A stretch of 64,000 bases of DNA from Vitrella brassicaformis CCMP3155. Its lineage: Eukaryota; Protista; Chromerida. The DNA lies in NCBI GenBank assembly GCA_001179505.1, contig CDMY01000356.1, positions 406,539 through 470,538 on the forward strand. The letters are read 5' to 3'. A program made the position numbers and the translations under genes. The first letter of the stretch is position 1, and each line of letters begins with the position of its first letter. The notes under the pieces were generated by a model. It saw only the letters and a list, made by a program, of their open reading frames with translations. It had not been told where the DNA came from and did no database searches. Shown in pieces: positions 29,084 through 34,441 of the stretch.

Positions 29084-29701
29084 CACAGGGGGAGAACCGT
29101 ACAGGCGTAAAGTGCCGTCAGGTTGTCTCGACGCTTTGACGATGGAGCACCGGCGAATAAGGCTGACAGAATAGACAGCTGGGAGAGAGCCTTTGGAGCA
29201 GAATTGGCGAGAGAGTTGCGCGCTTTGCCCTTGAAGTTGCGATCCGAGACGGAGGTGTCACGCGCGGCGGACAAGGCATTGGAACAGTGTGTCATGCATT
29301 CCCTGTCTGACTCCGTTGGATGAATCGATTCACATGGTGCATCAATCAATCAGTTCATGAGCGCTAGGGAGGACAAGTTGGGGACAAGTCTGTCTGCCAA
29401 ACGTACCGTACCCCACTCAGTCAGTCATGAGAAGCACTGACATGACATGACATGACCGATAAAGGTTGGACACACAAACAAGAAACAACAAACAACCAAC
29501 ACGCACGTCCTCTGCACAGGCAGCTCTCTTATCTTCATTCATCGGACTGTGACCCCCTCACTGCCATGCACTCATTCACCCCACCCATTCCACCCATTAG
29601 CTGCTGCACACTCTCTCTGCACACTCACAGAAAAACTCTCGCTGCTCGGTGCGTCCCTTTCTACCTATCCTATCTACTGGCTGCAATGCCTTGCCCCTCC
29701 C

Positions 29702-32554
29702 TCACTTAGCCCCCGTGAGTTCCTCCTGGTTCTCCTCCCTGTCGCTCTCTGCCCAGGGGGCCATCCCCGCAGCTGCAGCAGCTGCGTTGGGGGACATGAC
29801 CATGGCCTGTGTGTCACACAGTGAACAGTGGACCATTTGCTTGGCGCGTGTGTGCATTGCATTGTGTGCGTGAGTGTGTGCGGACCGCTTCGAGCCGCTG
29901 GCAGGCACTCATGGTCTTGACGTGCTCTAGCTCATCGTCGCGAATAGTCGTAAAGACATCATAGAGATTGCTGACGGATGCACAGCACATAACACACACA
30001 GTCAGCTCATATCAGGCGGCATGGCACCAAGTGTGTGAGCTGTTTGTTGGGTTGGTTACTTGATCTGCGGTCGTCTGGACTGGGCAGGTCGTGACGTCTG
30101 GAACTCATCAAACATGTACAGGTCGCCCGACTTGTAGTACTCCATCGCTACAGCCGGGGCCGGCAACTGGGAGGGGACACAACGCACACACGCACACACA
30201 GCATATACAACACACGACGCAAATGGATGCAGGCAGCATCATTGCCCCTCTGTCGTCATTTGCTCTGTCTGTCTGTGCAGCAGGTACCCTACCTACCCGC
30301 TTCAGTATCTGCTTGTTCTGCGAGACGAATTGGCCGTATGTGTCGACGGCGTGCCACTCGATGAGCTCTGAAAAATTGTAGGCCCACGTCGGTGAGATCA
30401 AGAAGAGAAGAATCAGAACCTGCGCACATGACATGCACACAACGAAAGCAACCACCGCACCGCATGGCATGGCATGGACATCGCATAGATGTGTTCTCCC
30501 ATCCCCTGGCTGGCTGGCTGGCTGACCCAAGCCCCAAACGCACCCAGTAGTATACGATGGCGGCGTGTCTGGCGAGAAAGCGGTCGAGCCATGCCTGGTC
30601 GCCTCCCAGGCTCTCCATTATGAACAGGTGGTGCATCTCGTTCCACTCCTCGGCGAAGTGCACCTTCCGCACCTCAGTACCCACACGCCACCAACCTACA
30701 CAACACACGACACGCACCAACACACCACAGACAGACGCATGACGAGCCCCGGGCCATGTATGTCAGTCATGTATACCCCTCCCTCCCTCCCTCCCTCCCT
30801 CCCTCCCCATCAAACCAGTCTCTGACTGACCGAGTGTCTCATAGAGGTGCAGCATCGAGATGTATGCGAAATAGGGCATCCGCGCCACGGTCTCGAGGAA
30901 CCAGAACCGCTGAATGGGCCGCTCGTTGTACAGCACATCCAGCAGCCAACACAGGAACAGGTAGGGGATCTGACACAAACAAGACACAATCGGCAAGGCG
31001 CATGAGCGTCCTGTCTTCCCTGGTGGACCTGTGTGTGTGTGTGTGTGTATGAGAGAGAGAGAATGTGCCCACCTTGAGCAGCAGGGGTGAGTTGAAGTAG
31101 GTCTTGATGGTGTCGTAGTCGACCGCTAGGTCCGTGTCTGGTGGGGCCGACTGTTTGTCCTTGTGCTTCTCCAGCAGGAACTTCATCTTCTCTACTCTCT
31201 CCTCCTCCCGCCGCCACACGGCATCGTTGTCCAGACGCAATCGACTCAACTCCTGACACAACACACACACAGACACCCCACCGTCGAAACAAAGGCCTTT
31301 CATGCCTGCATGCCTGCCTCTCTGTACGTGTGAGAGAGCAACGCTCCTTACCTGCCGCAGCCGGATGGTGTTCTCATCTGTCGGGTTCTGCACTTTAGAT
31401 GGCGTCAGCCTCTGCACATTGAATGTGGCCAAAACGTCGTCGAGGTTGAGATCCCACCGGCGGAGAATGCGCACTATGCCAGCGAATGGCCCGTCCCCCG
31501 CCTCTGCATTGGCCCACCCACTGGCTGGCGCCATGTCGCCAAATCTTATGGCGCGACGGATGGCCAGCCACTCGCGCTTGAAGTTCCACACGCCCATGCT
31601 CCACCCATTCGCCGGCACAGCCATGTCGAGAGGGCCTAGATCCTTGTCGTCGCGATACCTGCACAGGTCACGTATGCATCCCCACGGCGATCCATACATA
31701 CATCAGCAAATAAAGCATCCATCCCCGATCTGCCCTCCCACCCACCCATAAGCGGCGGCCTCCCTCCACTCTTCCAGACGCTGCAGGTCTTTGTCTGCGT
31801 CCCACGCGTCGTGCGCCTCAATCTCGAGTGCACCCCCACGCGCCGCAGGAGGCACCGCCCGCGCCTTCTGGATCAGCTCAGCCGTCCACAAGTTGGTCAG
31901 AGCAGCCTTCAACGCCGGACGGCCCGCCAGGAACTCATTGAGCCGGTCCACCTCCCAGCTGATGTATGTGACGGGCTGCTGGGCGAAGACTCGGGCGGCA
32001 GGCTTACTGCTGCCGCTATTGCTGCTGCTGTCCGCTGGGCCCTTGTCTTCCCCTTGTGCGGACAGCAGCTGGTTGGCGAGAAAGGTCATCTCGCCGATGA
32101 AGGACGGCGCGGGCAGTGTGGTCATGACAGAGTCATCAGCGGCATCGCGGATGTCCAGGCTCCCGTCGACCAGGAGCAGCAGCTTGCCACGCGGGTTGCT
32201 GCCGACGGCTCGACTGATGAGTCCGGTGCCGCGCCGCCACTCGCCCATCCGCAGCAGGGCAATGGCGTCGTCCTTCTTGACAGCATACTTGCGCAAGAGA
32301 GCAGATCCATAGACCCGCTGCAGGTCCTCATCCGACACCTTCAGTGGGCCCTCTCCCTGCTGTGTGGTGGTCGGTGGGGCACTCACAGCGCTGCTGCTGG
32401 ACAGCCGTGCTTTGGAAGTGGGTCGGCCAGGTGCCTGTCCACGGTGATTGTGCAAGATGCGATGAGAGAGGAGCGATGGCGGGCTGACGAAAGATGATAC
32501 ACGAGATGCAGACACCGCCAAGAGCAGCAACATCGGCACTATCAGCGGCTCCAT
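29702..32554 (-). CDS. PTOX: Plastid terminal oxidase (alternative oxidase family) with bipartite plastid leader and an N-terminal cNMP-binding-like (Crp/Popeye-type) domain
   Basis: Di-iron motifs in order: [48 protein letters not shown]. Leader [21 protein letters not shown]|FVSP. cNMP-like domain [11 protein letters not shown]...FIGEMTFL...[19 protein letters not shown]. The two parts join in frame through an 87-nt GT-AG intron (31745-31659). Confidence 0.85.
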
Positions 32555-32847
32555 TGTCCCGATGAAAATCAGCTGATTGCAGGCGGCCACTGGAAGATCA
32601 GCGGGGGGGAAGCAACAACTCACAGGACTTCATTCGACAAATGACCGCACTCGGGGATCTTGATCCACTCGGGAGAGCTGCGAGCTTGAGGTGCAGCGAC
32701 CAGATCTTTCGGTCAAAAGTGGAAGAGGGTGTGCCATGCGACATAAGATTGACAAAGGTTCAAGTGAAGCAACGATTTGCACTGAGCTAAACATGGCCTG
32801 TCCGAGAGACTGTGCAGAGCAGGGCCACGCCCGACTACCAACAGACA

Positions 32848-34441
32848 CTAGCGACTCACTCCCTCATGTTGCCCCTCAGCATCCCCAGCAGCCTCATCTC
32901 TCCTCTGACCGCGGGACAGAAAAGTGAAGGCCTGTTGTAGCGACAGGCCTCCAGGCAGCGAGGGTCCTATAGGTGAGCTCCGGCGTGAGGGCGGATCGAG
33001 CGGCGATGCGGGGTCGCCGTGAGGCTGGGGCGGGGAGATGATGGACGGAAGCACGCTCACGCCGCGACGGTATGATTGGTAGCGGATCTTGGCGAGCAGC
33101 CGCTGGAAGCCTCGCTGCTCAGTGCCCCAGTAACACAGCGCCACTAAGAGGAAGAGGAGCACTGCAGTCAGAAGAAAGGAACAGGAGCAAGCATCGCATC
33201 GGGGTGGGTGGAGGTGTTTGCCTATCCCCCCCTCCCCAATCGATCGACCCCCAACTGACCGACAGCGATGACGGTGGCCACGACATAGAGCTCTGAGCCG
33301 AAAGGCAGAGGCCCTCCCGTCAGCCGCTGCAGCCGCTGACACTCAGAGTCGCACCTGCACACCCCATCATAGCAGTACTCGAAGCGCCCACAGGCCTCCG
33401 GACACTCCTCTCCCACCAGCGCCACATCCGCGCACACGTAGAAAGCCGATCGATCGCTCCTTCGGCTGCCCCCAACGTCACCGTTCCCACTCTCACCATC
33501 ACCGGCAGCACCTGGCTGCTTCGTAACGGATGACGATCCCGGAATCAGTGGCGGGAGCGGTGGGGGCGGGTAGCGATATCTCGCAGAGGCCATGTATGTC
33601 TGGTTGCGACTCACGAGAGGGCGCTGGGTGGCCGACAGGGGAGGGGGCTGCGGGTGAAGAAACAAAGGGAAAGACTGGAGTCTGGTCGGAGAGGAAACTT
33701 TAGGTCCCCTGCTGACCTGCCATTTGAGTTGGAATGTGCACGAAGGGCAGTCGACACTGGGAAGCGCTACAGCCACTGTATGCGAACCTGACGCGGACAC
33801 CACACCACACCACACCCACACCCACACCCACACACACAGACGCATGCACAGACAGACAGGCAGGTGTGTGACGGATGTTGTCTGTCACCCATGCGTGCGA
33901 GCAGAACACGCAGACCACCTCACCTGTAGTGTTGGCACATCTGAATGTGTACTGCTCGTCGATATCCAATGGTGCGCGTGTGGCGGCATCGAGCGGTACC
34001 AGCCAGTGCTCCTTCATGTCGAACACCGGAGCAGTCGACAGACCTGCACAACACACAGCAGCACAGACAGCATCCAATCCATCTGTCGCCTGCAGGTACG
34101 CCACCCCCTGACTGTCAGCGTATCGGCAGTGCAGTGCCCTGCAGTGCCTACCTGGTGTCAGGGCTATGCGGCAGCGACCTCGGAGTGGCTTCTGCACACA
34201 AAAAGGGGAGGAAGGGCAGCCGATGCACTGCACCCATGGGGTGCGGAATGGATTCATCACACACGTTTCTCACCGCGATATGGTACCGAACCAGCAGGTG
34301 GTTGCCGGCTGCATAGCTGCCGTGCGATGGACCCGCGTCGTAGCCGCCACACGGAGGCTGATGGCTCCTCTCAGAGACAGCGGCGAAAGATCTCGGCAGC
34401 GGCTCATCAAGGCGACCATATTGTATGCGGTTGTTGGCCAT
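32848..34441 (-). CDS. Single-pass membrane protein with LPMO-fold-like (Cys-containing) ectodomain, EGF-like Cys cluster and cytosolic tail; N-terminus unresolved
   Basis: Spliced YGRLDEPLPRS...PPCGG...YAAGNHLLVRYHIA|KPLRGRCRIALTP...LPSVDCPSCTFQLKWQ...FYVCADVALV, then ECPEACGRFEYCYDGVCRCDSEC, then TM ELYVVATVIAV|VLLFLLVALCYW. No in-frame ATG was found ahead of the candidate signal-like exon (about 34620-34530). Confidence 0.55.

Follow-up and report, generated by a model that had tools for sequence, protein, structure and literature searches.

A predicted plastid terminal oxidase of Vitrella brassicaformis with a divergent cyclic-nucleotide-binding-fold domain, and its relatives in ochrophytes and cryptophytes

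Plastid terminal oxidases (PTOX) such as IMMUTANS of Arabidopsis and the enzyme of Chlamydomonas are built on a four-helix di-iron core with six metal ligands and a PTOX-type sequence segment. To our knowledge, all characterised PTOXs are single-domain proteins. The control of PTOX activity is still under debate in photosynthesis research, with stromal pH, membrane attachment and redox state as the proposals made so far. Here we describe a gene of the chromerid Vitrella brassicaformis CCMP3155, located on the minus strand (32554..29702) of a 64,000 nt stretch of contig CDMY01000356.1 (the window, to which all positions refer), whose nine exons encode a product of 668 aa. This protein has the core, the ligands and the PTOX-type segment in common with the two enzymes named above, and it shares a long N-terminal extension with the PTOXs of green algae and streptophytes. 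In contrast to IMMUTANS and Chlamydomonas PTOX, it carries an additional domain of ~170 aa with a cyclic-nucleotide-binding (CNB) fold between leader and extension, and its leader looks bipartite (signal plus transit), as for a complex plastid.

We consider it probable, at roughly 0.65, that the gene encodes a catalytically intact, putatively plastid-targeted PTOX of the long subfamily, with a degenerate Popeye-like CNB module that stems from a single inherited fusion and is no longer a canonical cAMP/cGMP receptor. Judged by its sequence, the gene belongs to a CNB-PTOX architecture which is found in other algae as well, and within it is a divergent representative whose CNB domain escapes Pfam.

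Domain architecture of the predicted protein

From the N- to the C-terminus, the protein is organised as follows:

32492..32554, minus strand: signal-peptide-like segment, aa 1-21, followed by Phe22 (Kyte-Doolittle hydropathy)
32360..32491, minus strand: transit-peptide-like segment, aa 22-65, rich in Ser, Thr, Arg and Pro (composition)
31850..32332, minus strand: divergent Popeye-like CNB-fold domain, aa ~75-235 (phmmer, AlphaFold2, structure matches)
31997..32068, minus strand: position of the phosphate-binding cassette, aa ~163-186, with a Ser-rich insert and no Arg at the canonical site (alignments A1 and A3, alignment to profile hidden Markov models, HMMs)
31073..31658, minus strand: exons 2 and 3 (aa 270-432), the conserved extension found N-terminally in long PTOXs (linker HMM)
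29705..30969, minus strand: exons 4-9, PTOX di-iron catalytic core and C-terminal tail, aa 433-668 (Pfam, ligands, model)

The N-terminal domain escapes the standard profiles. PF00027 (cNMP_binding, for cyclic nucleoside monophosphates, cNMPs) gave no match with exon 1 at E<=1 or with the full protein at E<=0.1, the peptides of exons 1-3 had no Pfam match when scanned singly, and PF04831 (POPDC) was matched in neither the exon nor the full-protein scans. Of the profiles that the preliminary description of this locus, made from the letters alone, had suggested for the spliced protein, AOX was recovered, and cNMP_binding and POPDC remained unmatched. A sequence search of the PDB with the domain and exon 2 returned nothing meaningful (only Natterin-3, E 0.07). 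Against 1.84 billion representative sequences, an exhaustive phmmer search with the domain gave ten weak matches (E 4.7e-7 to 8e-4), originating from algal transcriptomes (MMETSP, Prymnesium) and metagenomes. Nine of these ten pass Pfam cNMP_binding, and six of the nine also match POPDC1-3 (PF04831), three of them above its cut-off. Language-model features point in the same direction, with 39 of 40 matches in POPDC or cNMP_binding clusters (score 0.92); in the Atlas model of the protein, CNB/POPDC clusters are matched by residues 74-237.

An AlphaFold2 model of the domain, built on the alignment of the phmmer matches, reached a predicted local distance difference test (pLDDT) value of 73.4 and a predicted template modelling score (pTM) of 0.65. 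It consists of N-terminal helices, strands, a short helix, two strands and two long helices, in this order, and outside the insert described below barrel and helices have pLDDT values of 80-93. Foldseek placed this model next to 461 PDB chains at E<=0.001 with probability 1.00, the top 50 of which are all CNB. The best match by VIA-align was 3gyd (Mfla_1926; Z 15.0, root mean square deviation 3.0 Å over 149 residues), and 50 entries reach Z>=11.6, all of them CNB domains, cyclic-nucleotide-binding homology domains (CNBHD) or CRP/FNR proteins. Furthermore, the conserved core positions G89, W135 and L140 (domain numbering) are kept. According to the model, the N-terminal domain is a CNB fold, composed of an eight-stranded beta-roll with N-helix, cassette helix and B/C helices. 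The Crp/Popeye-type domain that the preliminary description had proposed is borne out in this respect: it models as a cNMP beta-barrel, and the motifs pointed out there fall on the expected elements.

Among described systems, POPDC and the bacterial Popeye-like proteins come closest. They include the best structural match, 3gyd, PF00027 occurs in the proteins nearest in sequence (in six of nine together with PF04831), and the C-helix pattern L.A.LxxxW...L..K is common to both. In contrast to POPDC, the Vitrella protein has no transmembrane helices, no PF04831 match and no DSPE/FQVT motifs, and its CNB domain is joined to an enzyme, not to a membrane anchor. Membership in POPDC was rejected because of the missing PF04831 match and the missing transmembrane helices, the sole N-terminal hydrophobic stretch being the signal peptide; the likeness holds only at the level of the CNB subfamily. 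The CNBHD of KCNH channels and FNR/CLP-type folds are also matched structurally (Z 12.6-13.2; 6syg, 9qll, 3iwz) and illustrate that a CNB fold can serve as a regulatory module without canonical cNMP binding. Here the kinship is limited to the fold and does not extend to the sequence, and our analysis gave no sign that the Vitrella domain holds an Fe-S cluster, cyclic di-GMP or a ligand of its own.

The phosphate-binding cassette deviates strongly from the canonical form G-E-x-x-x-...-P-R-[ST]-A-[TS], which the Vitrella sequence does not follow. Its Gly-Glu is retained (FIGEMTFL). The positions of the Arg and of the Ser/Thr are taken by Ser/Pro and by Ala or Lys in every alignment register, with Ser or Pro at the Arg position also when a profile of ochrophyte domains only is used. 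At the cassette loop the Vitrella domain has a Ser-rich insert of ~25 aa; residues 156-182 stay below pLDDT 50, and the insert is disordered in the domain model as well as in the full-length model. The preliminary description had mentioned the missing phosphate-binding Arg as a caveat, which holds, and with more force than it was given there.

The PTOX half is complete. Exons 2 and 3, including the motifs YGY and WNFxREWxAIRR, are not a novel linker but the extension that is conserved at the N-terminus throughout the long PTOX subfamily, since a linker HMM built from them (~160 aa) matches 136 of 141 PTOX proteins, among them those of Chlamydomonas, Chlorella, bryophytes and ferns. The extension begins at a (D)YG(Y/F) motif straddling intron 1 and is modelled with pLDDT values mostly of 86-97 in the full-length protein. 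A lead from the Atlas, an Xre-like helix-turn-helix in exon 2 (score 0.85, recognition sub-threshold), was rejected because exons 2-3 are this PTOX extension.

For the core, Pfam AOX (PF01786) scores 98.4 bits (cut-off 22.7) over aa 447-629, and the exon pieces match AOX individually. All six iron ligands (E458, E498, H501, E550, E619, H622) are present and invariant in 86 aligned homologs, as the preliminary description had read from the sequence; the helix with the first of them is encoded by exon 4. The full-length AlphaFold model (pLDDT 79.1, pTM 0.73) is confident for CNB domain, extension and core, and aligns to trypanosome AOX (9kun, 3vva, 3vv9) with template modelling scores of 0.59-0.62 by target. 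Among proteins with a name, PTOX or ubiquinol oxidases from algae and plants come closest (E 1e-95 to 1e-120), and among PDB entries mitochondrial AOX comes no nearer than E 0.009. The PTOX-type segment LPAP..YY..GDLY.FDEFQT..RRP.I.NLYDVF is present before the last ExxH helix. By these sequence features the protein is assigned to the plastid branch, PTOX, and not to the mitochondrial AOX.

In the leader, residues 1-16 are hydrophobic (Kyte-Doolittle mean 1.9-2.4) and Phe22 directly follows VSS, at which we place the presumptive cleavage site. Residues 22-65 are devoid of Asp and Glu and contain 9 Ser, 6 Pro and four each of Thr and Arg, and residues 18-64 are disordered in the full-length model (pLDDT < 50). 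Comparable ASAF-like motifs occur in ochrophyte orthologs (SNA|F and LSA|Y), and the same leader motif as in the fusion protein is found in a Vitrella paralog (P0043, see below). These features are in line with the two-part targeting signal used by complex red plastids, by which the protein would be targeted.

The same architecture in other algae, and a paralog lacking the domain

The preliminary description knew of no characterised fusion between a cNMP-binding domain and PTOX. The combination is not restricted to this gene, as PF00027 and PF01786 occur together in at least six public ochrophyte proteins (from five named species, plus an MMETSP transcript) and the Vitrella protein itself is public. 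CNB-PTOX proteins were found in Nannochloropsis oceanica (P0051, "plastid terminal oxidase", 620 aa), Ectocarpus (P0059, 735 aa), Pylaiella (P0050, 755 aa), Discosporangium (P0056, 657 aa) and Tribonema minus (P0062, "alternative oxidase", 678 aa) as well as in two MMETSP transcripts (P0044/P0045, 626 and 721 aa). Six of these seven orthologs (P0045, P0050, P0051, P0056, P0059, P0062) pass PF00027, with 28.1-37.6 bits at a cut-off of 27.5, and PF01786.

Identity between the Vitrella protein and the ochrophyte CNB-PTOXs amounts to 39-54%, and for P0044, P0045 and P0056 a single local BLASTP alignment spans 93-99% of the query. The order leader, CNB, (D)YG(Y/F), extension and AOX core is collinear in the seven orthologs and Vitrella (alignment A3); likewise, HMMs for CNB, linker and PTOX match in the same order. 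An HMM made from the ochrophyte domains only finds the Vitrella domain with 31.3 bits (aa 86-233). The ochrophyte proteins, which pass Pfam cNMP_binding, have a canonical cassette (FxGEaSF...GPR[ST]AT in alignment A3), whereas the Vitrella domain fails Pfam, lacks the Arg and contains the 25-aa insert. Judged from these cassettes, canonical gating by cAMP or cGMP is plausible in the ochrophyte relatives and unlikely in Vitrella.

A search for the same architecture in other algae was thus positive for these ochrophytes; in cryptophytes it led to proteins in which the domain is split by EF-hands. These EF-hand/PTOX proteins possess both CNB halves with one or more EF-hand pairs in between. One of them, EKX37726.1 of Guillardia theta (P0167), is annotated as "centrin/plastid terminal oxidase fusion protein". 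The order in Baffinella (P0082) is N-terminal half of the CNB domain (95-166), EF-hand pair (188-252), C-terminal half (280-328), extension and AOX. P0060 also belongs to the cryptophyte centrin/PTOX proteins with a split CNB. They share with the Vitrella protein the group in the PTOX tree and the CNB scaffold upstream of the extension, and the EF-hands are inserted in the cassette loop, at the same site as the Vitrella insert. The difference lies in what occupies this site: EF-hand pairs replace the cassette in cryptophytes, a short disordered Ser-rich loop is found in Vitrella. The EF-hand pairs are likely to be a Ca2+ sensor, so that one and the same scaffold appears to have exchanged its cNMP site for Ca2+ sensing.

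In a tree of the PTOX part, obtained by a quick maximum-likelihood search, one group unites the two Vitrella proteins with every ochrophyte CNB-PTOX and with the cryptophyte EF-PTOX clade, at a support of 91 in the Shimodaira-Hasegawa-like approximate likelihood ratio test (SH-aLRT); it is nested in a 97-supported clade together with streptophyte long PTOXs. Since Vitrella groups with the ochrophyte CNB-PTOXs and the cryptophyte EF-hand/PTOX proteins on this tree, the fusion most likely arose once and was then inherited. It is not unique to Vitrella but belongs to a family that is visible in the databases and apparently undescribed. No paper characterising the ochrophyte CNB-PTOX proteins was found, at a thin coverage of subscription journals. 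Neither did we find a paper on a PTOX with a cNMP-binding or EF-hand domain; subscription journals were mostly outside the coverage, so this is absence of evidence only. PTOX reviews and a Nannochloropsis paper mentioning PTOX are silent on such domains.

In the Atlas, a haem-oxygenase-like iron-containing redox-enzyme domain is found together with cNMP_binding in bacterial clusters (Planctomycetota, Cyanobacteriota; score 0.78). We regard this pairing of a CNB sensor with a helical iron enzyme as an analogy and as a lead only.

Vitrella has a second PTOX gene product, P0043 ("Ubiquinol oxidase", 487 aa), with the same leader, extension and core and no CNB domain. Its identity to the fusion protein is 71% by BLASTP and 84% over the columns kept for the tree. 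In the fusion gene a direct repeat of 11 nt, GACCTGCAGCG, lies on either side of the CNB domain, at 32326-32316 and at 31789-31779 of the minus strand; it encodes DLQR, and an in silico deletion between its copies yields a 489-aa protein collinear with P0043. By chance, ~0.08 such 11-nt repeats would be expected in the exon. This is suggestive only, but the paralog may have lost its CNB domain through a deletion between the direct repeats.

Several further proteins (P0015, P0040, P0041/P0042) are mosaics of the fusion gene and P0043, switching at different points within exon 5 (30544-30695). They are probably assembly chimeras through a near-identical stretch; alternatively, they may have arisen by gene conversion. 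P0015 (664 aa, MMETSP) was considered as a second full-length fusion gene and rejected, being more likely an assembly mosaic. P0042, which is derived from a metatranscriptome, lacks seven residues (AVPPAAR; ~31838-31858, exon 1) just past the CNB C-helix. This gap sits between short GCGCG(G/T)GG repeats; polymorphism, slippage or an error of the assembly may account for it.

Gene model and transcripts

The gene model comprises the following elements:

32555..32682, minus strand: 5' untranslated region (UTR), with contig ends at 32659, 32673 and 32682
32554-31746, minus strand: exon 1
31745-31659, minus strand: intron 1, 87 nt, GT..AG, phase 2, with an in-frame TGA
31658-31352, minus strand: exon 2
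31252-31073, minus strand: exon 3
30969-30831, minus strand: exon 4
30695-30544, minus strand: exon 5
30419-30297, minus strand: exon 6
30166-30060, minus strand: exon 7
29970-29886, minus strand: exon 8
29806-29702, minus strand: exon 9
29312..29704, minus strand: stop codon (29704-29702) and 3' UTR of ~390 nt, with contigs extending to 29312-29314 (29374 in X7)

All eight introns are of the GT..AG type, with lengths of 87, 99, 103, 135, 124, 130, 89 and 79 nt, and the first in-frame ATG is located at 32554. The spliced product is letter-for-letter identical to the public protein CEM05282.1 / A0A0G4F067_VITBC of strain CCMP3155 (P0039), whose public name is only "Alternative oxidase".

To the region 29200-33200 we mapped contigs from four public runs belonging to three studies. 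Introns 1, 2, 5, 6, 7 and 8 are absent from the contigs, exactly at the predicted borders. The joint across intron 1 (31656/31744, skipping 87 nt, CT..AC on the plus strand) is present in contigs of all four runs, and intron 2 (31253-31351) is likewise removed in all four. A contig of 1574 nt (X7, record 16) joins exons 4-3-2-1 and reaches 32682, another of 1551 nt (X6, record 12) joins exons 3-2-1, and one of 914 nt joins exons 5-9 and includes ~390 nt of 3' UTR. Intron 1 interrupts the codon of G270, a Gly that hardly varies among the 86 homologs. The 87-nt intron with its in-frame stop, postulated in the preliminary description, is spliced out in each run, and the search for two separate mRNAs ended in contigs that splice exon 1 to PTOX exons. 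Together with the identical public protein this agrees with its claim of one gene with one leader: it is one expressed gene with one mRNA.

Across the exon 4/5 junction the proteins P0015, P0041 and P0042, which are transcript-derived, are continuous, and the residues encoded there (G479 and W480-W481, GWW) are invariant or nearly so in the 86 homologs. The listed exon 5-9 contig stops at 30649. Since the paralog mosaics switch inside exon 5, the break of the contigs at exon 4/5 is probably due to the near-identical paralog interrupting the assembly.

The upstream neighbour has a separate contig starting at 32712-32743. Within the 5' UTR there is an upstream open reading frame of 11 codons (MKSCELLLPPR; 32633-32598, minus strand, ATG at 32633), which is covered by the transcript contigs with ends at 32659-32682. 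In intron 5 (30420-30543) the depth shows spikes, and in all four runs many contigs end in unrelated sequence at 30453-30524; this intron appears to carry a GCCAGCC-rich dispersed repeat, copies of which are transcribed at other places. GGGA and CA microsatellites are located within introns 4 and 3 (30769-30817 and 31022-31067).

Possible roles of the CNB module

Since the catalytic half is intact, the protein is predicted to pass electrons from plastoquinol to O2 on the stromal side of the thylakoid, as expected from the family. According to the model the Vitrella domain keeps the beta-barrel, the cassette helix and the B/C helices; it has lost the Arg and Ser/Thr that grip the cyclic phosphate and has gained the disordered Ser-rich loop at this site. 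Most likely it is no longer a canonical cAMP/cGMP receptor. With a C-helix that is predicted to run directly into the PTOX N-terminal extension, it may persist as a regulatory or structural module which is independent of a ligand or controlled differently. The sister paralog does without it altogether.

Several points weigh against this reading. An Arg (Arg188) is located three residues off the canonical position. Furthermore, POPDC proteins bind cAMP via non-canonical residues, without the canonical Arg; by this analogy an absent Arg is no proof of lost binding. What we say about ligand binding and activity is deduced from sequences and models, and the plastid location is putative, read from the composition and the motifs of the leader. 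On the ochrophyte profile, free-standing CNB proteins outscore the Vitrella domain (P0009 with 61 bits and P0007 with 52, against 31); common descent of the fusion is therefore argued from architecture and the PTOX tree, with an SH-aLRT of only 91 for the key branch. As to the transcripts, the assignment of the four runs as RNA is a guess, but since their contigs are free of introns, they are transcript-derived and can hardly represent DNA. Finally, the exon 4/5 joint is absent from all listed contigs of the four runs, and 30674-30695 is uncovered (zero-depth bin).

The preliminary description had favoured an oxidase gated by cAMP or cGMP, which was pure inference and has been weakened by the destroyed cassette, the 25-aa disordered insert and the domain-less paralog. 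In a broader form, the Vitrella domain would be a working receptor for a small ligand (cAMP, cGMP or another nucleotide) which allosterically gates plastoquinol oxidation. The CNB fold is intact, the Gly-Glu of the cassette and the B/C helices are conserved, POPDC-type domains are precedents for non-canonical cAMP binding, and the order CNB, C-helix, effector is that of known CNB-regulated proteins. Moreover, the ancestral module was probably a true receptor, because the ochrophyte orthologs retain the canonical cassette. We nevertheless hold a working receptor in Vitrella to be unlikely, considering that the phosphate-binding Arg and Ser/Thr are absent, that the insert takes the place of the cassette loop, that PF00027 is not matched even at E<=1 and that a paralog exists without the domain; in addition, we know of no cNMP source in chromerid plastids.

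At the other extreme, the domain could be a functionless relic from a CNB-PTOX ancestor, tolerated, on its way to loss and already deleted in the paralog. A degenerate cassette with a low-complexity insert is what one would expect of a relic, as is a domain outscored on the PTOX-CNB profile of the ochrophytes by free CNB proteins that are unrelated to it, and the gap of the paralog matches a deletion between the two direct repeats. Yet the reading frame is open across the whole domain, barrel and helices model well outside the insert, the core positions G89, W135 and L140 are retained and the gene is expressed, which makes this scenario improbable, too. A merger of two separate genes, one CNB-like and one for PTOX, by the gene model has no positive support except that the exon 4/5 joint is not crossed by contigs, and it is rejected as extremely improbable, given that contigs splice exon 1 onto the PTOX exons up to exon 4 with the first iron-ligand helix, that the public protein and three transcript-derived ones are continuous, that seven orthologs have the same collinear architecture and that a domain-only search over lengths of 112-357 aa came back empty, which leaves exon 1 without any recorded product of its own.

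A sensor-type domain is fixed to PTOX from brown algae and eustigmatophytes to chromerids, with EF-hands instead in the cryptophytes. As a tentative generalisation, to which we give only limited credence, the red-plastid PTOXs could form a family of second-messenger-gated plastoquinol oxidases on one CNB scaffold: with a cNMP cassette in ochrophytes, with EF-hands and Ca2+ control in cryptophytes, and with a Ser-rich loop in Vitrella that might be controlled by phosphorylation or act as an intrinsic pseudo-ligand. The CNB-PTOX family is more interesting than the Vitrella copy. The latter would represent the degenerate end of the series, a natural cassette-less control, with its paralog as a natural domain deletion. 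The family as a whole suggests that second messengers act directly on the electron safety valve of the chloroplast, which would concern a large share of the marine phytoplankton.

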